Notes: generated by a model not told the origin, from the letters alone. A DNA stretch of 64,000 nucleotides from Chlorokybus atmophyticus (GCA_009103225.1 RHPI01002368.1:463397-527396); one strand, 5' to 3'. Counted from the first letter of the stretch, positions 9,738-29,513 are shown. A program made the numbers and translations.

Positions 9738-10954
9738 GTGTGCTTGACAGCATCCCGCGTTGTGTATAATACTAGAATTGTCCGTCATGTAGCTGTCTTC
9801 TGACTTGCTTGTTGTCTGTGTGTGCCTCTGGCAAATGTGTGCAAAGCATTTGCGCAAAGAATCATTGGGGAGTGGGCAAGGCTGATAAGCTCGCCTGAGT
9901 GACACCTGGTTGATGTGCTTTGTGCATGCACATCTACAATGTGAAGTTATATGCACAAGGCCGTTACAATTGAGGGCAATCAGGACAGTTCAGCAATGCA
10001 GACAACATCTTCACACACATCACCTACGTAGTAGTAGTGAGTCTTATATAACTTATGTACCGCTTGCTGAGTGCCCAACACTAATGCTGACTTGTGCCTA
10101 CCATGACAGTTGCCAAACCTCCGCCTGGCCAGCTTTACACTACAAGTTGCGGTATTGTGTAGTGTGCGATTGATGTGGTGGTGGTAGTTGTTAGAGCCAC
10201 TAACTTTGCATATATACTTGGTGGTTGATAGGAGGCCCTGCGCATGCATGCAGCGCAGTTGGCCTGTGCGCGCTCACATGCGCATCGTACAACCCTTTCA
10301 TTGCAGATGTGCGCTGCATCCCAAACTCATATATATGTAAGTATGTGCGCTCATACCCAGCTTCACAAGCCCAAAACGTGCGTGTACAGGCGAAATGCGC
10401 AGGTACTGAAGCTTGCGGCTGACACATGCATGACTAACAGGGGGGTGGTAGAAGTAGAGTAAGTGGTAGAGTGTAGGAGGCACGCAAGCGCATGGTGTAG
10501 CCCAGTGGTTTTGTAGAGTGAGGTGAGTGTCATGCATGCTGTACGACATCATGATGTGGGTTGAATATGCATCCGCATTGTTTGTACATGTGGTTCTTGT
10601 GCACTCAGCCCAGAATTCACTCGCTTATATATGCACACGTGTGCTCACAGGCATGCGCATGTGCGTGTATGTGCTACACGCATTCCTATAATCACCACAC
10701 AGTGCAGGGTACTGCAGAAGAGAAACTAAACGAAACGTATAGGAGTATATGTAAAAAGGGAAGGATGATGTCTCTAAACACACAAAGGATGCCTTCACAA
10801 CAGTATGCCTGATCAACTCATGACATATTAACCACTAAAGGGGTGCCGTCGCACACTCTTCAATCCAATATCCCACCAGATGGCCAAAGAACACACTCTC
10901 TTATTCAAAGGGGGGCCAGTGATGGTAGTCTAGTATAGTTGTATGCTTATTTCT

Positions 10955-12332
10955 TTACTCGGGCTTTGTGACTTTGTGCACCCTGTACACGGAAGACGGA
11001 CCGCCCACCAACGGCTTGTACTTGAGGATGGCCTGTAACATTGCCATGCCAAACACATCAGCACCAAATACAACATGTCTCCATATCAAGCATGATATGC
11101 ACAGCGGATACACGCCTGCTGGTGGTAACACAAGCACACACATACCCGCGCCAAACACCCGTGCGTGCACACACCTGTGTACGCTCACACACATGCGCAT
11201 ACTCTTGCACACACAAACACAGACACAAGCCCGCGCGCATACACACGCACACACGCACACATGCTCAGTCACCTGTAGACCGCGCTTGTAGTCCGGCAGC
11301 TCATTGGCCTCCCTGTATGCCTGCGCGCGGGTCCAATCAGCTCCAACTCACAAGCATACACAACATGTTGTTAAGTGTCCACCATCATCATCATCATCAT
11401 CATCACACCTGCAATGAGGTCCACTGCGCGTAGTTGAACGCGCGTGTGCGGTCGGCCGACACGTGGAAGTTGGCACTAATGAAACCGGGAGCGCGCTCCA
11501 CCGTCTTGATGAACTCGGCGATGTCGCCAAGAAGCGCATCGATCATTGCGGGTGAGTCCACCTGAAACATGTGTGCGTGTGTTTGGTGAGTCACTCACGT
11601 GTGTGATGTTGTGTCAGTGTGGAACAACAATCTTGCCTGGAACATGACGAGGACGACCACGCTGGAGGCGTTTTCTTGCACGGTTGTGGGAGGGTTTGCC
11701 CCGCGCGTGGCATGCACGGTGAAGGCCTTACACAACAACATCATATCGGCAAGGGACCAACATACGAATAGACATATCGACAAACTGGACCAACCCCAAC
11801 ATGATATAGACGCAAGAGCCCACAAACACGCATTGCCCACGCATGCACTTGCGCACACTGCACGCACATGCGCGAGTGCATTGTGCGTGTGCGTGCACCC
11901 ACCCAAATGCACACATATGCATACACTCACGCTCACGCGCGCGTGCACACACACACACACATGCGCACACGCGCACACCTGTTTGCGGCTGATGCGAGGG
12001 GGGTCGGGCACAAGTCCCGACGAGGCCATATAGGCAGCGAAAGTGCCGGCAATCGGCAGCACGCTGCACGCTTCAATAAAGGCCTGAACACACCAAAACC
12101 ACACTGGTAAGCACACGTACAGCGTGTACTCCTGTACCCAACATGAACACACACAAGCACACATCCAACACACCTTGTCAGTTTGGAACTGAATGTAGTT
12201 CAACACAGTCGTGCTGTCCAAACCCGCGTGCAAAGCCGCCGACACGAAGCCCGGCCGCGCAGCAAGCATCTTGTTCAAATTCTCAATGCTCCTGTTTCGA
12301 CACAAGTGACCCACATGTCAACAACAACATAC

Positions 12333-12365
<33 letters not shown>

Positions 12366-13770
12366 CACCAACATCCCCTCACACCTCAGCATGTCGTTCT
12401 GCGCCTCTTTCGTTGTTCTGAACACGTTCTGCACGACGGTGTACCCCGCATCCTTTGCGATAGTTGTCGCGGGACCGGTGGGTGGAGCCGCAACAGCGGG
12501 AACGGGAGCTGCGTCGGGAGAGGCGTGTGCGTCTCCTCCGGCGGGGGGTGAACCACCTAATACATGTGTGTGGGTGGGTGGGTTGGGGAGGGGGAGGGGG
12601 GCGCGGGGGGGTGAGGTGGGTGTTGGATGAAGGGTTGGGCTTACCCTTGGCGGCGGCGACGTCGGCGAATAGCGGGCGAAGGTCAAAGTAGATGCGGAGC
12701 TCGTCGACCTGACAAACAGTGTGTGCGTGAGTATACACGTCCAGTCAAACAACCGAGAAGAAGTAGAAATGACCACACAATGGCCAACCACACACACGCG
12801 CACGCGCCTGTCCAACATCTAGCACAAATGACCAAACAGTGACACACATACACACACACATGCTCACACTTGCGCACGCATGCGCACACATATGCGCTCC
12901 CGCGCACGCAACAAACCCGACAACCCAACATCACCCCCACCTTATTCCCCTTCATCCTAAACACATCATACGCCGGATACTCCGCGTCCGGTATCCCCAG
13001 ATTGTCCCTGTAGTAGTGCGTCATGAGCTCGACGACGATATAATCCCCGGTCTGGGTGATGCCGGTGACCTTGTGGTGGGAACCGCGAGCGAGGCCCTTC
13101 TTGATGAGCATAGGGACCATGGAGATGATGGTGGACTTGCCCTTGACGGCCGGGAAGGGGTTGCCGGTAGGGGCCATCTGAGGGAGAAGGGAGACAGGGT
13201 GTGAGAGCGCGTGACACACAAGCATATGCGCGCGCACGCTTGCAACTGAGCATGCGCGTGCGCGAGCGCGTGCGTGCATGTGTACCAATACAACGCACAC
13301 GCTCTCTCCCCTCCCTCTCACCTGAAACGTCGCGTCCTCCGTGAAGTAGCTCACGACCTTCTCGGCGTCCTGCTGGTTGTACGCCTCCAGCACCTTCATG
13401 ACGGTACCAAGGGGAGTCTCGTCCTCGATCGGCGTCGAGACGTAGCGGTCGCCGAGGGAACGCGCGATCATGGCGTCGCGGAAGAGGGGAGCGAGGTCGA
13501 AGTAGATGCGGAGCTCGTCGACCTTGGGGGGGGAGAGTGTGGGTATGTGGGTGTGTGGGTATGTTGTTTCCGACACAACATGTGGGTTTGACACAACAAG
13601 TGCACATGAACAACATGTGGTGATGTTGTGTCGGGCGCGTATGGAAACACGGGGGGTTTGACATGACAACATGCCACGTACCGACATGTGTGCTTGGTGT
13701 GATCGATCGCACAACACGGCAATGCTTGCACTACCTAACACAACATGTGTGCTTTGCCACATCTACAGCA

Positions 13771-13845
<75 letters not shown>

Positions 13846-16189
13846 TGTCTTTCTCACCTCGTTGCCCTTCATGCGGAACACGTCCGTTGCCGGGTACTCC
13901 GAATCTGAACACCCACATAACCCACAATGAGTTTGCCTCTTCTCTGATTATCCAACACAAACTAGTAACAAATCGTCATTGCATAATGGGTTCAATGTGC
14001 CTGCTGTGTGTGTCTCTGCGTCCTCACGGGCTGTGCGTGCGCGTGTATGAAGCAGAGTGTACAAACACACACACACAACACAACAAGGGTCTGTCACTCA
14101 CCAGGGATGCCGTCGCGGTAGTACTTGGTCATCAGGTCCACAGTGATGAAGTCGCCGACCACGGTGATGTTAGTGATCTGCTCAGCACAACAAGGGTGGC
14201 AATTGTCACATACCCATATAGTTTGGACAAAAAAAGCAGATATAGGCACACGCACGTTCGTGCGCATGCGAAAGCACTCACGGATATGTGAGCACGCGCG
14301 CACATCAACGCGCACACTTGTGTGCGCTTATGCACGCGTACACGCGCACGGACGTATCAACATGCACCAGCGCACATCAACAACACACACACGTGTACGC
14401 ACTCACGGGCACTCATACACACGCATACAGACACACACGTGCACACGAACGCACAACACACGCGCGCATACAAGCAAACACACATGCACACAGTCATGCG
14501 CACTCGTACACGCACGCATACATGCACACACACACATACCCTGTGCAGTGATCCCCTTGCGAGTCCCTTCTTGATGAGCATTGGCACCATGTTGACGATG
14601 GTGGACTTGCCCTGAACAGCCGGGAACGGGTTGCCCGCGGGAGCCATCTGCAACAACAACAACGTATATTTTATTACCATGTCAGTGTGTGGTGATGAAA
14701 CGTGTCACATGCATCCGCATATCAGTGCAGATGACACACTGTTGTGATGCGATGTATAACATCAACGTGCATGAGCGTGTACTATGGGTACTTGAGTTGC
14801 TTGCACGCACGTGAGCATTGCATGCATGCAACTAAGATACACATACACCAAGCTGTGCACACGCAGACATACACACATAGGTACGCACACATAGATACGA
14901 ACATATACACATGCACACGCACGCATACACACCTGGAAAATGGCATCCTCAGTGAAGAAGGACACAATCTTTTCCGCATCCTGCGAGTTGTACGCCTCCA
15001 AAATCTACAACACAACACAACATCAAACCCACCCCAAACCCCACCCCCACCCCCACCCACCCACTCACCCACCCACACATCCCACATACCCACCCACATT
15101 ACTCTCACCTGCATGACCACTCCCACCGGCGTGTCGTCGCGGTAGTTGCGATACCCGTACCCGAGGTACTTGCTGTAGTCTTCTGCCTCATTGTTGCTGG
15201 GTGGAGCTGTGGTTGATGTTGATGTTGTTGTTGTGGGAGGGGAGGCAACAGCTACGGCTTGGCAGCGGGCGTGGTGGCGAGTGCATGACTTGGATTGCAA
15301 CCTGAGGGGGAAGAAGTGTATGTTGGGAGGTGGCGGTGGTGGTGATGGTGACATTGCTTTGTTGTGGCATGTATTGCGTGTGGGGATGTGAGTATGTGGG
15401 CTATGCGATGAATGTGCGTGTGTGCGCGCGCATGCGTGTGTATATGTGCGGGTGTATGTGCATGCGTGTGCGCATGAAGAGAGGAGTACACTAGTGCAGG
15501 TATAGTGTGTATGGGTATGGGTATGGGTATAGGTATGTGTGTGCAGCGAGTGCAGGTGTATGTGGGCATGCATATGTGCGTGCAGGTATATGCCTTCATG
15601 TGTGTCACAGTGTGAGAGTAATTTTGAGTGGGGTGCATGCGCGTGGGTGCAAGCACCAAAAACCAACCTTTAGAGTATGAGTTTGGGTGCATGCGTTTAG
15701 TTCATGCAAACATGCACACATAAGCGGCCTATGCGTTGCTGGGTGACTCAATATGACTGCCTTGTTGGGTTGAACGCATTGCACCTGGCAACGCTACAAA
15801 TATCAAACTTCAAACACATGATACACATAATAGGTACAACAACAGAGTGCTACAGAAGTACACACTCAGTACATAGACACCGCCTGACAAGACATGCAGG
15901 TATTCTTGTAGCCAGCACAGCTGAAACGATGCTTGAGAGAGTTTGACAGGAACGAATACATAGGCTAATCAACTATACTCAAAAGGCCCGCCAGTCAAGG
16001 TTTTGACTCTTGTGTAATGTAAGAGGCTTACTTCTTGGCAGCAGGGGTGAAGCGGGCTGGCAGGGCAGCAGCCCGGTTGCGCGCAGGCAGAACAGCTGCC
16101 GCCGCCGCCGCCGACGACGATGATGAAGAGGCTGTAACATGGAGAGCAGAGTGCGGGGACACGGCGGTCGCTGAGGACGCCATCGCCAT
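10955..16189 (-). CDS. Plastid-targeted fusion protein: transit peptide + 2 SnoaL/NTF2-like domains + 2 ABM (ActVA-Orf6-like cofactor-free monooxygenase) domains; 16 exons
   Basis: In-frame exons: 16189-16032, 15301-15109, 15004-14933, 14647-14540, 14177-14102, 13904-13858, 13522-13322, 13177-12941, 12708-12645, 12556-12386, 12291-12174, 12083-11979, 11726-11637, 11562-11409, 11320-11273, 11032-10955. The N-terminus is Ser/Ala-rich ([18 protein letters not shown]...[11 protein letters not shown]). Two repeats read LEAYNxQDAEKxVSxFTEDAxFQ...[23 protein letters not shown]. Two repeats read PGFxSAxxH...NYxQ[FW]. Confidence 0.85.
13774..13843. repeat. (GA)n microsatellite in an intron
   Basis: Direct dinucleotide run. 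Confidence 0.98.
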
Positions 16190-17017
16190 CGCTACCGCCG
16201 CCGCCGCCGCTGCTATGCTGCCCCTGTTTTCCTTATTTTTCCACGCATTTCTTGCTCATTTTTGCTTGTCGCTTCGGCTGATTACGGCAACGTGACGACG
16301 CACCAGATAACTGTCCGTACTAGGCGTAACAAGATGACGCTTTCGACACAGTTTGATTCACCGCTAACTGGATTAAACTGTGCTTTAGGGCTTTGTGCCT
16401 GGGGTCAGCAGCACAGTTACACATCGAGTGCAACACGGTTTAACACGTAGATTCTTGGTCAGAGTCAGTCGCGTAACGGGATTACGCGCGCAGGCTGTTG
16501 CGTCGCTGCAACGCAAGTTGTGGATTCTTAAGCCCATTTGATAGTTGAGACTTTCGCCTTGCGAAGCCAACCAGCCTGACACAAGTGTTACCCGTGGGAT
16601 GCAGCCGATATCGACTTGATGGTATGGATATTCGGTCTATACGTAGACCACAAACTTTCTAGCCGAAGTAATGACCGGTTGATTCTAAGCTACGCAACAG
16701 TCACTTCGATCTTACAGAAGGGTGCGTTGTCGCAGGCATTGAGAGCGACCAAAAGCCCACTTACAGGCGAATAAGAAGGCGAAGCTGTATGGTAGTATCG
16801 GCTGCAAGCGTCAAGGGTCAAGTTGGGCTGTCTCTGGTCTTTAATCGGTTTGACACAACACTTCTGTATGAATGCAAAGGTGAAAATATGCCCCAAAAAT
16901 AAAGTTCAAGGAAATACCCACAAGTTGGTTTGTTGGTGTGCCAGCTGGCGGTGGCGGAGAAGGCGAAGGAGACGGAGAAGGCGGCGAGGGTTGGACGCTA
17001 GTTTGACACGTGGCGCA
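16190..17017. promoter_or_regulatory. Shared divergent promoter/5' UTR region of the SnoaL-ABM and EthD genes
   Basis: About 830 bp between the two oppositely oriented start codons; contains GACACGTGGC (G-box/ABRE-like) at 17005-17014. Confidence 0.55.
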
Positions 17018-17160
17018 ATGGCTGCCCAGGTACGACAACACCCTACTTGTTGTTGGCAATGCTGAGTGGCTATTTCTGCCCTGCACCTGCCATGCATTTG
17101 CTTTGATGAGTCGGTTAGCATTAGGCTTTAGGCTTTTGCTTCCGATGTTTTAAGCATACT

Positions 17161-17191
<31 letters not shown>

Positions 17192-20100
17192 CTTGGTGCA
17201 CACAGTATACTGTTGCTGTGAAACATTTCATTGTACAAGCACAGGCTACTGATCGGGTTGGCCCATATTCACTCAAGTGGCAATCGCAGTGGATCAGGTG
17301 TTGCGTTCAAGCAAGAAACAAACCTGCTCAGCTGTCGCATTGTCATTCGTAAGCAACACAAGCGTAAAAGTGTACTACTGGTAGGCGTTTTGCGTTTATT
17401 TTCACAACACTCCAAAGTTAAAATGTATTTCAGACTGTATTCACATCTTTGTTGCCACTACTACCCCCCACCCCAGCCAACAACAGCATCAACAACAAAC
17501 TCTCAATGCATGCCCCATCCAGCGCATATGTCCTTTACTCAACTCACTTATGGGAGCAACAAAACTGTTGATCATATGAGTATTATCTGGTTTGCATGCT
17601 TGGTGAAAAGGTGAAAAGGTATTACACAAGCCAGTGCCTGCATACAACAATGCATGCATGTGCATTACTTAGTTATTGACACGTCACTTCTTGTTCTCAT
17701 CCAGTGCGCGATGGGTTCGATATCTCTCCCGATGGCGAAATCCGCCTCGCCTTCCATGCCGACTGCCTCTTTCATCAAAGGCCAGACTCTAAAGAAGGCG
17801 ATATCACTCAAAGCCGCCCCTCGCAGACAGGTGAGTGAGATCACAACTCAACACATGTGCGTGTGTGTACATGTTGTGTGGCTGTAAATGCGTATGTGTG
17901 TTTGTCCAACAGAGTGTTGCTATCCGTGCGGTGATGACGCCACCCGTCAGCGAGGACGAAATCAGCCGCGCTCTGCACATGCTCGACGCCGGGGGCAGCA
18001 TTGAAGTAAGCACACATACTGATACTACTTGTGTGTATGTTGCATTGACTCACCTTCCAACATTATGCGTGCATGCATTGTCAATGAGCACTTGTTGCTT
18101 CCATGTGGTTTGCACCTTGAGCTGTATGTCATTCACTCGAGCAGCCCCATTTTTGCATGCAGGCACACACGCGCATGCATGCTCTTATGTGTAAGTGCGT
18201 GTATCGTGAGTCACCATCGTGCCAGTGTACTAAAAATGTGTCCTTGTGTTGGAACACTGCAGGAGCGGTCTGCGTGGAGAGCGAAGCTGTGGCGTGAGAT
18301 CATGGAGGCAGGAAAGGGCACGTTCACCACCGCACAGGCACGTACACACCCTTGCCTCCTCTGAAATGTGATGAGACCATCATACATTTGTGTGCATGTG
18401 CACGCGCACATGCATGTGCGTGTGTGTTGGTGCATGTGTGCATGTGTCCACGTGCGTGCGCACACGCGCGTGCGTGTGCAAATGCATGTGCGCGGCAGGT
18501 ATGCGTGCACACTTGCGCTTGCGTTCCCGCGCATGCGTGCGCATGAACGCGCGCACGCGCGTGTGTGTGCGTGCGTGCACACTTGCCATTGCGTGCATGT
18601 GCACGTGCATACGTGTGTGTTTATTGATGAATGCAATCCTTTCAGGTTGCTGCGGCGGTTTACCGTGTCGAGCAGGAGAAGTTTGGCGAGTCTCTGTCGG
18701 ACAACCTTGCCGACCTGGCCGCACGCGACGCAGACGGCCGCGTCACGTTCTACGTACTCCTCTGGAAACGCTCCGGTACGCGCCTTGGCTGCTGCGTTTG
18801 CACTGCTTGCACACCAAACAACATCACTGTGCTGTGGCTCAAGCAACATGCACTCGCCTGCACACACACGCTCACATGCATCTGCATACGCGCTGTGGTT
18901 TGAGCAGCACACTTCCGCACACGCACGCACTGAGCGCATGTGCACGTGTATGTTGCGCGCGCGTGTGTGTTCTTGTGTCACACAAGCTTCTCGCATAACT
19001 CAGATTGCAACTACAAAGGAAAACAAAATTATCTTTCACCTGCAATTGTAGTCACTACATCACTGCTTATGTTTCATTGTAATCCTGCCGTACTCATCGA
19101 TCGCTTGTTACCCGTTTTAGGTTTGAGTCTTGAGCTGTTTGACGACTACTGGCGCAACGTGCACGGCCCCGTATGCGCCCGTCTCCCCGGACAGCACCAG
19201 TACTGGCAGGTGAATGATAATAACACACACACTCTCTCATAACAAGATGATGGTGATGTTGACGATGTGTGTCTACAGTTTCATGTGGCGCACTCGGATG
19301 GAGGCATCTGGCAGGCGCCGGCTGGTGTGGAGATTGAGACGGCAGAACACCGACAGTTTGATGGTAACTTATCATGATGGCGGTGTGTGGGGTTGGGTGT
19401 GCACACGTACACACACGCACACAGTATCATCTCATGTGTGCATGCGCGTGCGATAAAAGGCATGTCAACATTATTGTTGTTGCATTGGTTCGCAGAAATG
19501 ACTGTTGGTAGATGTATATACCCCACATGTTTGTCTGAGTGCGTCATCCTGTCCCTGTTCTGTCCTGTGCCAACCACACAGAAGTTGTCGTATGTGTTGG
19601 TTGTATCACAAACTGAGTGGCATCACGCGCAGGTATTGCGGAGCTGACTTTCCGTAGCGTTGAGCAGCGTGCGATCTGGTTCAAGGCCGCGGGCATCCTC
19701 ATGGACGACGAGCACAACGTCTTCTCAAAGGCACTCGGATACACCACATCCGACGTACGCTTGTGGGCTTGCGCGCATGTGTGCATGCGCATACGTGTAT
19801 ATGTGTGTACATGTGCACGCGCGCGCATACGTGTGCGGGTGCCATTGCACGCATGGAGTGCGTGTGCGTATGCGCGTGCAAGCGCGCGTGCGTGTGTGCA
19901 TGCGCGCGTGTGCATGTACATGCCTGTGCGTGTGCAAGCTGCCATGCCTAAGCCTGTAGCATTCCATTGCATTCTGTGGCTGCGTGGCACTGTGGCAGTA
20001 GACCAATTGTTCATATGCAAGTCTCTCACATGCTTCGCTACATTGTCTCTCAGGGCAACTCCATCACGTTCAAGGATGTCGTGCGCAACCCCGCACCCAA

Positions 20101-21182
20101 CGGCACACAGCCTTTCATCAAGCTGCACACGCTCATCCGAAAGGCACGCGTGTGTTGCATTTTTGTGTCATCAACCCTTTACTGTAATGACACCGTCATA
20201 TTGTATCACGTTGTAGCGTAAACATAATGATTGCTATACACTACAGGTGCCTTCTGCTGATACTCAAGCCTTCAGACGGTACATGATGGACTTCACGGGC
20301 GCTCTCTACTCTATTCCACAGGTGAGTGACACCAACACCAACATCACCATCGACAACCACCACCACAACAGTAACAACAACAGCAACAACATGTGGCATT
20401 CCAACAGGTGACGAAGATCCGCCTGCACCTTTTCGACGGTTTGGACCTGAGCCGGCCGGATGCGCAGGGCGTGGCTCACGGCGAGACCGAGCAGTACTGG
20501 TATCAGGTAACGTGTGCGTTGACGTGCGCGCGCGTCTATTGTTGTCGTGATTATACCGCTCGCTATGTCAATTGCACCAAGATGATAACACTATGTGACG
20601 GTTGGTGCTTACTTGCTTGCATTATAGGCTGCGCTTGAGCTGTGTTTCCCGACAAAGCTTGACATGGAGTTGTTCTTCGAGCACCCCAAGTACAAGGCCG
20701 CGTGCGCCGACCAGGCCAGATACGTGGCGGTAAGCTGTGTGTTACACACCAAACTTCAGTGTATGAGCACATGCACGCTTGATATTGGCAAAGTTGTGCC
20801 TGTTGTATCCAACAACATTGGAGGCAAATATCACCTAAGAATTGAGGGTGTTTCCCGCGTAAAGTCCACTTGCAGAAATGCTGATGATTATTGTACGCAT
20901 CTGGGTGCATGCTGGTACCTGATATAAGAATCACTCCTGTAAATATGAGCTTGGAATTTGTGTTGGGGTGCGTGCAGTGCTCATACGCTCCTTTATGTGC
21001 AGGCCATGGGAGTGTTTCCGCAGCGCACGGCGTACACATTTGTGTACAGCGACAAGATGACGATGGCGGGGATCCGTTCGTCGGTGGTGGCGCAGAACAT
21101 TACTGACATCGGCGCCACCAACCAGCTCCGCGACGACATCTCCGAGCTCATGGTCAAGGGCTGGGGCCAGCACATGCTGTAA
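17018..21182 (+). CDS. Plastid-targeted tandem EthD-domain (dimeric alpha-beta barrel) protein of bacterial/cyanobacterial type; 13 exons
   Basis: A 12-nt first coding exon (ATGGCTGCCCAG, 17018-17029) splices in frame to 17705. Transit peptide MAAQCAMGSISLPMAKSASPSMPTASF...SVAIRA. Core: ARDADGRVTFYVLLWKRSGLSLELFDDYWRNVHGPVCARLPGQHQYWQFHVAH...FDGIAELTF...LMDDEHNVFSKALGY...KIRLHLF...TAYTFVY..MTMAGIRSS..IGATNQL. The YWRNVHGP and FDGIAELTF motifs are EthD-like. Confidence 0.85.
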
Positions 21183-21799
21183 AGTACAATGATGGTGATA
21201 CGATCTGGTCATAATATGGTCAAATGTGGGTCATGAGTGTCCTATTCTTGTATGTATGATATAAACAGTGATGCGGGTTTGGATGTGCGGTTGTTGAGGG
21301 AGTACACATCTCTCAAGTAGGGTCATGAGTGCTGTCGTGGGTGTGTGGCATTGGTGTGAGATGGGCATCTCGACAAGCAGCCTCTATTATCGTGGACATG
21401 TACGTGTTGAATAACAGTGCTGCACCATGCCTATCCGCGCACATCACATATATCACATACAACCTTAGCCACACCTACACGTCCACGGCGCAACGCGAGC
21501 GCCGCGTCCGCCTCAGGGTATCTCGATAAGACTGCGCACAACTAGGTCAGCGGGACCTTTGTTTGGATATTATTAGGCAATTTGTTGTGCAATAGAAATG
21601 AAGGAGTAGACAATGGAAATGCGCCTCTCACCCATCATATATAGACATTACATAGTAACGCATTTTGCTGCGGTGGTCATGGGTGCTGGCATTGTCGAAT
21701 ACTGATGACTGCCTGGACACAACCAACGCCTGATGCTGAATATCATCATCATCACCACATGTAGCGCTCAGCTCCAAACGGGGGGGGGGGGGGGGGGGG

Positions 21800-26600: not shown

Positions 26601-29513
<2,913 letters not shown>

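Follow-up and report, generated by a model that had tools for sequence, protein, structure and literature searches.

Divergent nuclear genes for SnoaL/ABM and double-EthD proteins in Chlorokybus atmophyticus as probable descendants of one bacterial gene cluster

What brings two intron-rich genes for bacterial-type enzymes head to head in an algal genome, and do their products serve one pathway? The question is raised by a stretch of 64,000 nucleotides from Chlorokybus atmophyticus (GCA_009103225.1, RHPI01002368.1:463397-527396; hereafter, the window), which contains gene A, encoding SnoaL/NTF2-like and ABM domains on the minus strand, and gene B, encoding a double-EthD protein on the plus strand (Table 1). 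Herein, we propose that two parts of a single bacterial gene cluster gave rise to this intron-bearing nuclear pair and that the two proteins act together, a reading to which we assign a probability of about 0.68. The proteins of genes A and B very probably work together because their counterpart enzymes adjoin one another or are fused in the bacterial cluster. As far as sequence comparison goes, there is good support both for a functional link and for a bacterial origin from the identity and invariant residues of the EthD core, the recurrence of gene-A-like SnoaL and ABM domains beside bacterial EthD genes, the fusion proteins, and a gene row found in Nostocales.

First, gene B is a member of the bacterial double-EthD family. 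In the core (aa 125-417), it shares 50-58% identity with the bacterial proteins, and all 27 invariant columns of a 43-sequence alignment, with His, Asp, and Glu among them, are present in it (27/27). The annotated protein of gene B (P0001) matches Pfam EthD (PF07110) at 55.3 bits, with a cut-off of 22, in two stretches. NCBIfam returned at threshold only the generic "EthD family reductase" and no equivalog for any cluster protein, and the PDB sequence search revealed no solved structure related to gene B by sequence. In the AlphaFold2 model of the paralogue P0002 (437 aa, 62% identical to gene B), the core has a predicted local distance difference test score (pLDDT) above 90 and consists of tandem ferredoxin-like alpha+beta barrels in one chain. 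Based on this model, gene B is predicted to encode a single-chain double-EthD barrel, i.e. a pseudo-dimer of such barrels, in the same two-barrel layout as the bacterial family. In contrast, the EthD protein of Rhodococcus, 4-methylmuconolactone methylisomerase, and the fungal proteins of the TpcK/MdpH type are single-barrel and dimerising; single halves of the P0002 model resemble the methylisomerase with a template modelling score of 0.77-0.80 at 16-18% identity. Compared with the bacterial family, gene B adds a presequence, a helical stretch of about 65 aa, and 12 introns, and is without the conserved C-terminal partner domain. Among the matches listed, the only eukaryotes with double-EthD proteins are Chlorokybus and Mesostigma, with two each. 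In two trees, these four algal proteins form one clade (Shimodaira-Hasegawa-like approximate likelihood ratio test, 99-100), which sits inside a supported cyanobacterial and acidobacterial clade. Because one algal clade is nested in a bacterial clade, the algal EthD genes have a single bacterial origin that predates the split of Chlorokybus and Mesostigma. Inheritance from the plastid ancestor and later transfer both predict nesting among cyanobacteria, and the tree fits either.

Second, the bacterial double-EthD genes have counterparts of gene A as neighbours. Seventy-six loci were fetched from species-representative genomes with the EthD alignment alone, and 74 of these were non-duplicate. 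The bacterial EthD relatives take three forms, namely proteins of about 300 aa with EthD alone, proteins of about 515 aa with a C-terminal domain, and fusions of 700-1200 aa, in which the two EthD domains share one chain with SnoaL_2, CMD, Glyoxalase/VOC, or AtaL (P0009, P0010, P0014, P0017, P0020, and P0026); the named relatives come from the cyanobacteria Geminocystis, Waterburya, Dendronalium, Anabaena cylindrica, and Nostoc. Within 10 kb of EthD, 61 of the 74 loci contain a SnoaL domain resembling those of gene A (same strand in 58), and 18 contain an ABM domain resembling those of gene A (same strand in 17, 2-6.6 kb downstream). In three Nostocales genomes (L003, L004, and L005), a Nif11-SnoaL_2-SnoaL_2-ABM gene lies directly downstream of the EthD row, which there comprises a CMD gene, a 518-aa EthD gene, and a CMD-EthD-VOC-(AtaL)-SnoaL_2 gene of 1054-1201 aa. 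In Nostoc UHCC 0302 (L002), the row contains a separate 105-aa ABM gene, annotated as such by Pfam and 35% identical to the second ABM domain of gene A. The initial annotation of the window had called both genes bacterial-type, in agreement with the homologues and the EthD tree, and had proposed a check of whether the bacterial homologues are neighbours in one operon; an operon-like row, with some of its members fused, is indeed what these loci contain. In the library of papers searched, nothing relevant was found on EthD together with SnoaL, Nostoc, cyanobacteria, or streptophytes, or on Nif11 together with SnoaL, and no description of the row was found there.

These counts bear on the explanation that the adjacency arose by chance, i.e. 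that each gene was acquired or positioned on its own, that their roles are unrelated, and that they share nothing more than a spacer. The orientation, unlike that of the bacterial operon, and the greater divergence of gene A from its bacterial relatives (24-35% identity vs 50-58% for gene B) would fit such an origin. However, most bacterial loci contain the three domain types of the pair within 10 kb, several proteins unite them by fusion, and double-EthD and cluster-type SnoaL proteins are retained in both Chlorokybus and Mesostigma. Moreover, we roughly estimate that, with about ten such genes in about 10,000, chance would place another member of the set alongside in well under 1% of cases. 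Chance adjacency is thus considered highly improbable, and the descent of both genes from one bacterial cluster is preferred.

Third, gene A can be aligned with proteins of the row. Its relatives were taken from the best 120 of 270 matches. The tandem SnoaL part matches paired SnoaL_2 domains in the fusion proteins (E 5e-20), with the motifs GN.F and ELRI[YF].D, and the SnoaL-SnoaL-ABM part aligns in order with P0205, a cyanobacterial Nif11-SnoaL_2-SnoaL_2-ABM protein of about 500 aa (E 3e-27, 24% identity). Gene A thus has the NTF2-like/ABM order of P0205, P0183, and P0198, whose genes adjoin double-EthD genes, but it is without Nif11 and carries a second ABM domain; ABM-1 is 34% identical to the ABM domain of P0205. 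Pfam SnoaL_2 (PF12680) reached 26.1 bits, with a cut-off of 27, on an open reading frame (ORF) of gene A that contains introns and is broken by an in-frame one. The homologous domains in P0009, P0020, and P0205 pass this model clearly, and Atlas features assign SnoaL_2 to domain 2 of gene A, which is 27-31% identical to the SnoaL_2 domains of the cyanobacterial fusion proteins. The gene A SnoaL domains had no significant match among PDB sequences. In a cyanobacterial relative of gene A, the second SnoaL domain matches limonene epoxide hydrolase structures (E 6e-6), and gene A shares with the SnoaL cyclases and limonene-1,2-epoxide hydrolase the NTF2-like alpha+beta cone family.

From the N-terminus of about 90 aa, gene A continues with two SnoaL/NTF2-like domains, a Pro/Ala linker, and two ABM domains. 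The SnoaL repeats are 77% identical and have two intron positions in common (after FQ and before VDELRIY), the two ABM domains are 35% identical with one common intron position, and either SnoaL copy is equally far (26-28% identity) from both bacterial SnoaL types. Because the copies are alike, share intron positions, and are equidistant from the bacterial types, the four-domain layout grew by duplication within the alga, after intron gain. The SnoaL copies of gene A are a recent internal duplicate, whereas the P0205-type proteins contain two old bacterial types. SnoaL repeat 1 is interrupted by four introns and repeat 2 by one (12941-15004); since repeats of such high identity differ in intron number, introns were gained or lost after the duplication. 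One intron of gene A (13178-13321) is in frame and without stop codons.

The structure of the two genes was established by reading both strands of 10800-21500 and assembling the exons of genes A and B by script, and RNA contigs from four public Chlorokybus runs (X1, X2, X3, and X6) were compared with 15190-21189. The start codons, at 16189 for gene A and 17018 for gene B, are 829 bp apart, which agrees with the initial annotation of two divergent, intron-rich genes (15 and 12 introns) with starts about 830 bp apart. Gene A runs from its ATG to the stop at 10955, with a coding sequence of 1920 nt and 15 introns, 14 GT-AG and one GC-AG (after 11637, minus-strand donor 11636). Two RNA contigs, of 2246 and 1856 nt, span its first junction (16032/15301), and the longer one agrees with the coding sequence plus untranslated regions. 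The RNA runs contain 0.27-0.33 of the 31-mers from 10955-15004, and about 0.28 was estimated for the case that every predicted exon of gene A is transcribed. For gene B, 11 of the 12 junctions were seen in contigs of X1 and X2; the remaining one (20321/20408) lies inside a repeat that was skipped in the contig comparison, and the contig pieces are compatible with it. According to the RNA, the start codon of gene B belongs to a coding exon of 12 nt, after which an intron of 675 nt extends to 17705, and exon 9 ends at 20143, with a GC donor. The introns 18338-18645 and 20144-20246 of gene B are of the GC-AG type. Over both genes, GC-AG introns account for 3 of 27, two of which, in gene B, are confirmed by RNA. 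A search with the last exon of gene B retrieved the public model of this gene (P0001, Chlorokybus atmophyticus Chrsp10S01490, 390 aa), which is 100% identical over that exon, and the paralogue P0002. The public model can be corrected by the RNA contigs, which support 425 aa: it omits exon 4 (18263-18337), ends exon 8 too early by 12 residues (19719-19754), and reads two extra residues past the GC donor (20144-20149).

Both proteins begin with extensions that are missing from the bacterial relatives in the alignment. In gene A, aa 1-90 contain no Asp or Glu, 24 Ala, 16 Ser, and 11 Thr, with a positive net charge; in gene B, no acidic residue occurs in the first 59 aa, which are rich in Ser, Ala, Thr, Lys, and Arg and positive in net charge. 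The transit-peptide-like character reported in the initial annotation is borne out by this composition. The N-terminus of gene A is a putative transit peptide, and the presequence of gene B is likewise a putative targeting signal. The alga-specific extension that follows in gene B contains the blocks [DE][VI]x[RK]A[LM]xxL (E-I-x-R-A-L-x-x-L; E-I-S-R-A-L-H-M-L in gene B and its algal relatives), W[RK]xx[LM] (W-R-x-x-L), and VExEKFG, appears as low-confidence helices in the model of P0002, and matched neither Nif11 nor any other family in the Pfam check. As a lead only, the W[RK]xx[LM] block is reminiscent of the Rubisco-binding motif of Chlamydomonas pyrenoid proteins.

A plausible chemistry is suggested by the ABM domains. 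The 39-aa exon of ABM-1 matches the anthrone monooxygenase PenE (9kdp, E 2e-4) and ActVA-Orf6 (1lq9, E 2.3e-4), and the best PDB match of the 51-aa exon of ABM-2 is ActVA-Orf6 (1lq9, E 9.6e-7); the anthrone oxidase-like protein 5f9p is also among the matches, which beyond the top one range from E 2e-4 to 6e-3. On the single ABM-2 exon, Pfam ABM (PF03992) gave 17.6 bits, under the cut-off of 23.1. The ABM part of the cyanobacterial relative of gene A likewise matches ActVA-Orf6 and anthrone monooxygenases among PDB sequences. Gene A has PGF[LIV]SA..H.S.D.T...NYAQW in common with ActVA-Orf6 and the tandem-ABM anthrone monooxygenases, and 9kdp and 5f9p contain two ABM barrels per chain, as gene A does. 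In the NYAQW motif, ABM-2 retains N and W, and ABM-1 retains N with F in place of W; the Asn and Trp are reported to be active-site residues of ActVA-Orf6. Because the ABM exons of gene A match ActVA-Orf6 and anthrone monooxygenases best, a quinone-type chemistry is plausible for this part of the protein. Oxygenases of this type oxidise anthrones to quinones without a cofactor (PMC7247197). Gene A differs from the ActVA-Orf6 group in having no polyketide synthase (PKS) context and in the fusion of ABM to two NTF2-like domains and a presequence.

These matches might also suggest that the pair is a plastid tailoring set for aromatic polyketides or anthraquinones, with a cyclase, an anthrone oxygenase, and a decarboxylase, and with the PKS elsewhere in the genome. 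The first matches of the ABM exons are in line with this explanation, fungal emodin-type clusters include EthD proteins as putative decarboxylases (PMC4591646), and 5f9p is the top fold match of the EthD model too. Nevertheless, no PKS was found in the 64-kb window by ORF and Pfam checks, and 79 bacterial loci, examined to 10 kb from the homologues, yielded no PKS or nonribosomal peptide synthetase, i.e. no ketosynthase or megasynthase; in these loci, one stray DTACS ketosynthase-type motif lies at the edge of one locus and the scanned ORFs above 1300 aa are multicopper oxidases or signalling kinases. The conserved partners are instead CMD, VOC, DJ-1/PfpI, epimerase-like proteins, GlgX, and partner-switching stress regulators. 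In addition, the NTF2-like domains of gene A match the general SnoaL_2 family, and the SnoaL cyclase model PF07366 gave no match in the SnoaL region of the intron-containing ORF. We therefore regard a polyketide tailoring set as unlikely. The closeness of the ABM half to ActVA-Orf6 and the tandem-ABM anthrone monooxygenases has been upheld, as have the functional pairing, the bacterial origin, and a plausible quinone-type chemistry, but the aromatic polyketide frame, including the polyketide origin of the substrate, is not sustained.

Another explanation is that the two proteins are not enzymes of one pathway but ligand-binding or stress proteins joined by inherited linkage alone. Many NTF2-like proteins and alpha+beta barrel proteins of the DABB/NipSnap type are ligand-binding or stress proteins. 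Swiss-Prot fold matches of the P0002 model include plant stress-response A/B barrel (DABB) proteins and NipSnap, the Foldseek matches, at about 10% identity, comprise 5f9p, sulfur oxygenase reductase, bacterial chalcone isomerase, and DyP, and the bacterial cluster adjoins STAS/SpoIIE/HATPase_c_2 partner-switching genes. On the other hand, His, Asp, and Glu are among the EthD invariants at 50-60% identity between alga and bacteria, N and W of the catalytic ActVA-Orf6 motif are retained in ABM-2, and fusion with the enzyme folds VOC and CMD has occurred repeatedly. A purely binding or stress-related role without a common pathway is accordingly judged improbable.

Returning to the preferred reading, in which two parts of one bacterial cluster act together, we propose that the products of genes A and B would act one after the other, without cofactors, on a single small cyclic substrate that is oxygenated, such as a quinol or anthrone-like phenol, a quinone, or a lactone. 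The ABM unit would perform an O2-dependent oxidation towards a quinone, and the NTF2-like and EthD barrels might contribute acid/base isomerisation and ring or decarboxylation-type steps. Both proteins would work in the plastid after import, and the divergent 0.8-kb arrangement could serve joint transcription. Since the cluster is nowhere accompanied by a scaffold synthase, the pathway might handle or detoxify a metabolite rather than build a polyketide. A processing or protective role is also suggested by the partners CMD, VOC, and DJ-1/PfpI and by the adjacent partner-switching stress regulators.

The transcript contigs end near 16215 (gene A) and about 16996 (gene B), about 780 bp apart. 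No Rfam family was found in the spacer between the start codons (16190..17017), whose repeat content is just a short GGAGAAGGCG-type repeat. X1 and X2 contain both transcripts at comparable depth (contig depths 269 and 566; 160 and 210). Neither transcript occurs in X3 or X6, which carry the same organism label and belong to the same study as X1; they gave just 20-nt low-complexity matches on 15190-21189 and may represent another library type or sample.

Several observations weigh against the descent of the pair from one cluster as a working unit. No substrate is known for any of the enzymes that the bacterial cluster encodes. The SnoaL domains of gene A are just 24-31% identical to those of the cluster, a global search with domain 2 (candidates of 107-340 aa) gave nothing at E<=1e-3, and the cluster proteins are the closest relatives of gene A among the loci and proteins fetched here. 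Since SnoaL-SnoaL/ABM-ABM results from internal duplication in the alga, the likeness in domain order between gene A and the bacterial protein is partly convergent. The position of Tyr51 of ActVA-Orf6 is occupied by Phe or Leu in the ABM domains of gene A. The bacterial genes are co-directional and 1-6 kb apart, whereas the algal pair is divergent. Finally, co-expression amounts to joint presence in two runs.

Bacterial contamination of the assembly was also considered, and it is ruled out by the spliceosomal introns, the spliced RNA, and a flanking eukaryotic gene. The exons of this gene, ThiC (thiamine pyrimidine synthase), lie at 27088-28625 on the plus strand, about 6 kb past gene B, and show that the surroundings are ordinary nuclear ones. 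When the bacterial cluster proteins were compared with the window by tblastn, the EthD, SnoaL, and ABM parts alone were found, with no CMD, C-terminal partner domain, or DJ-1/PfpI.

The bacterial row has further members, which were counted over the 74 loci with Nostoc proteins as queries (Table 1). In Acidobacteriota (Bryobacterales and Vicinamibacterales; L006, L008, L051, L053, L066, and L077), the row is found at 65-74% protein identity to that of the Nostocales locus L004, which implies that the row as a whole was passed between phyla. The C-terminal partner domain (alignment A3; L004:5763-6386 and 72 further loci) has about 200 aa and is fused to or located beside the double-EthD gene. 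Its mean column identity is 78%, four Cys and two His are invariant, and Trp is frequent. The domain has no Pfam family, the PDB search gave only a weak SnoaL-like hint, no profile similarity to the SnoaL domains of gene A was found with hhalign, and its AlphaFold2 model (pLDDT 43) is too poor for use. Frequent neighbours of the cyanobacterial cluster are very large multicopper oxidases (1430-1600 aa) that carry FG-GAP and DUF4114 domains, accompanied by OprB-type porins.

Table 1. Features of the gene pair, with positions counted from the first letter of the window, and partners of the bacterial double-EthD genes (positions there refer to the individual loci)
Feature	Position	Strand	Basis or occurrence
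Gene A coding region (16 exons, 639 aa)	10955..16189	minus	hand-built model, canonical splice sites, open frame
Gene A exons 1-8	16032-16189, 15109-15301, 14933-15004, 14540-14647, 14102-14177, 13858-13904, 13322-13522, 12941-13177	minus	
Gene A exons 9-16	12645-12708, 12385-12556, 12174-12291, 11979-12083, 11637-11726, 11409-11561, 11273-11320, 10955-11032	minus	
Gene A presequence and Thr/Pro/Ser-rich linker (~aa 1-90, intron 1 included)	15190..16189	minus	amino-acid composition
SnoaL/NTF2-like domain 1 (~aa 105-236, five exons)	13469..15147	minus	77% identity to domain 2; tblastn matches to SnoaL_2 in bacterial loci
SnoaL/NTF2-like domain 2 (~aa 249-382, exons 7-9)	12655..13432	minus	Pfam SnoaL_2, Atlas features, homologues
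ABM domain 1 (~aa 411-510)	12000..12482	minus	PDB matches of 39-aa exon; Phe at Trp position of NYAQW
ABM domain 2 (~aa 521-639)	10955..11717	minus	PDB best match of 51-aa exon; Pfam ABM
Shared spacer, 828 bp	16190..17017	.	between the two start codons
Gene B coding region (13 exons, 12 introns, 425 aa)	17018..21182	plus	RNA junctions (X1, X2), open frame
Gene B exons 1-7	17018-17029, 17705-17830, 17913-18005, 18263-18337, 18646-18775, 19121-19209, 19279-19363	plus	
Gene B exons 8-13	19633-19754, 20054-20143, 20247-20321, 20408-20506, 20628-20729, 21003-21182	plus	
Gene B presequence (~aa 1-57, introns included)	17018..17945	plus	amino-acid composition
Alga-specific helical extension (~aa 58-122, ~65 aa)	17946..18705	plus	common to Chlorokybus and Mesostigma proteins, missing from bacterial ones
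EthD domain 1 (~aa 125-244)	18712..19754	plus	Pfam EthD; YWRNVHGP; invariants His160, His177, Glu207, Asp229, Glu230
EthD domain 2 and C-terminal helices (~aa 245-425)	20054..21179	plus	second Pfam EthD stretch; paralogue model
C-terminal partner domain			73/74 loci
CMD (AhpD/PcaC-like)			66/74 loci
DJ-1/PfpI			58/74 loci
GlcNAc-2-epimerase-like protein			57/74 loci
VOC/glyoxalase-fold			54/74 loci
GlgX			39/74 loci
STAS			39/74 loci
AtaL			28/74 loci
OprB-type porin (SLH-OprB)			25/74 loci
Cupin			23/74 loci
SDR			16/74 loci
SpoIIE			14/74 loci
HATPase_c_2			13/74 loci
Large multicopper oxidase sites	L003:1-1800, L067:10-4797, L068:1412-6214, L076:16296-20813		

Bacterial genes are already known in streptophyte algae. 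Here, two of these retain their bacterial neighbourhood, which provides rare and direct evidence of acquisition and upkeep as a working unit. The conserved row, with CMD, double-EthD, the Cys/His/Trp-rich domain, DJ-1/PfpI, VOC, SnoaL, and ABM, is strongly conserved between Cyanobacteriota and Acidobacteriota, with protein identities of 65-85%, and adjoins stress-signalling and glycogen genes. We tentatively raise the possibility, still doubtful at present, that a whole bacterial operon (double-EthD, NTF2-like, ABM, DJ-1/PfpI, and possibly more) entered the common ancestor of Chlorokybus and Mesostigma, gained transit peptides, and now forms a pathway in the plastid that acts on oxidised metabolites of the quinone or phenol type and is missing in other green plants, with the present pair as its last linked piece. 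The algal pair reduces the bacterial row to a minimal domain set, apparently of use in a plastid, and it offers a concrete target for quinol, anthrone, and lactone chemistry.

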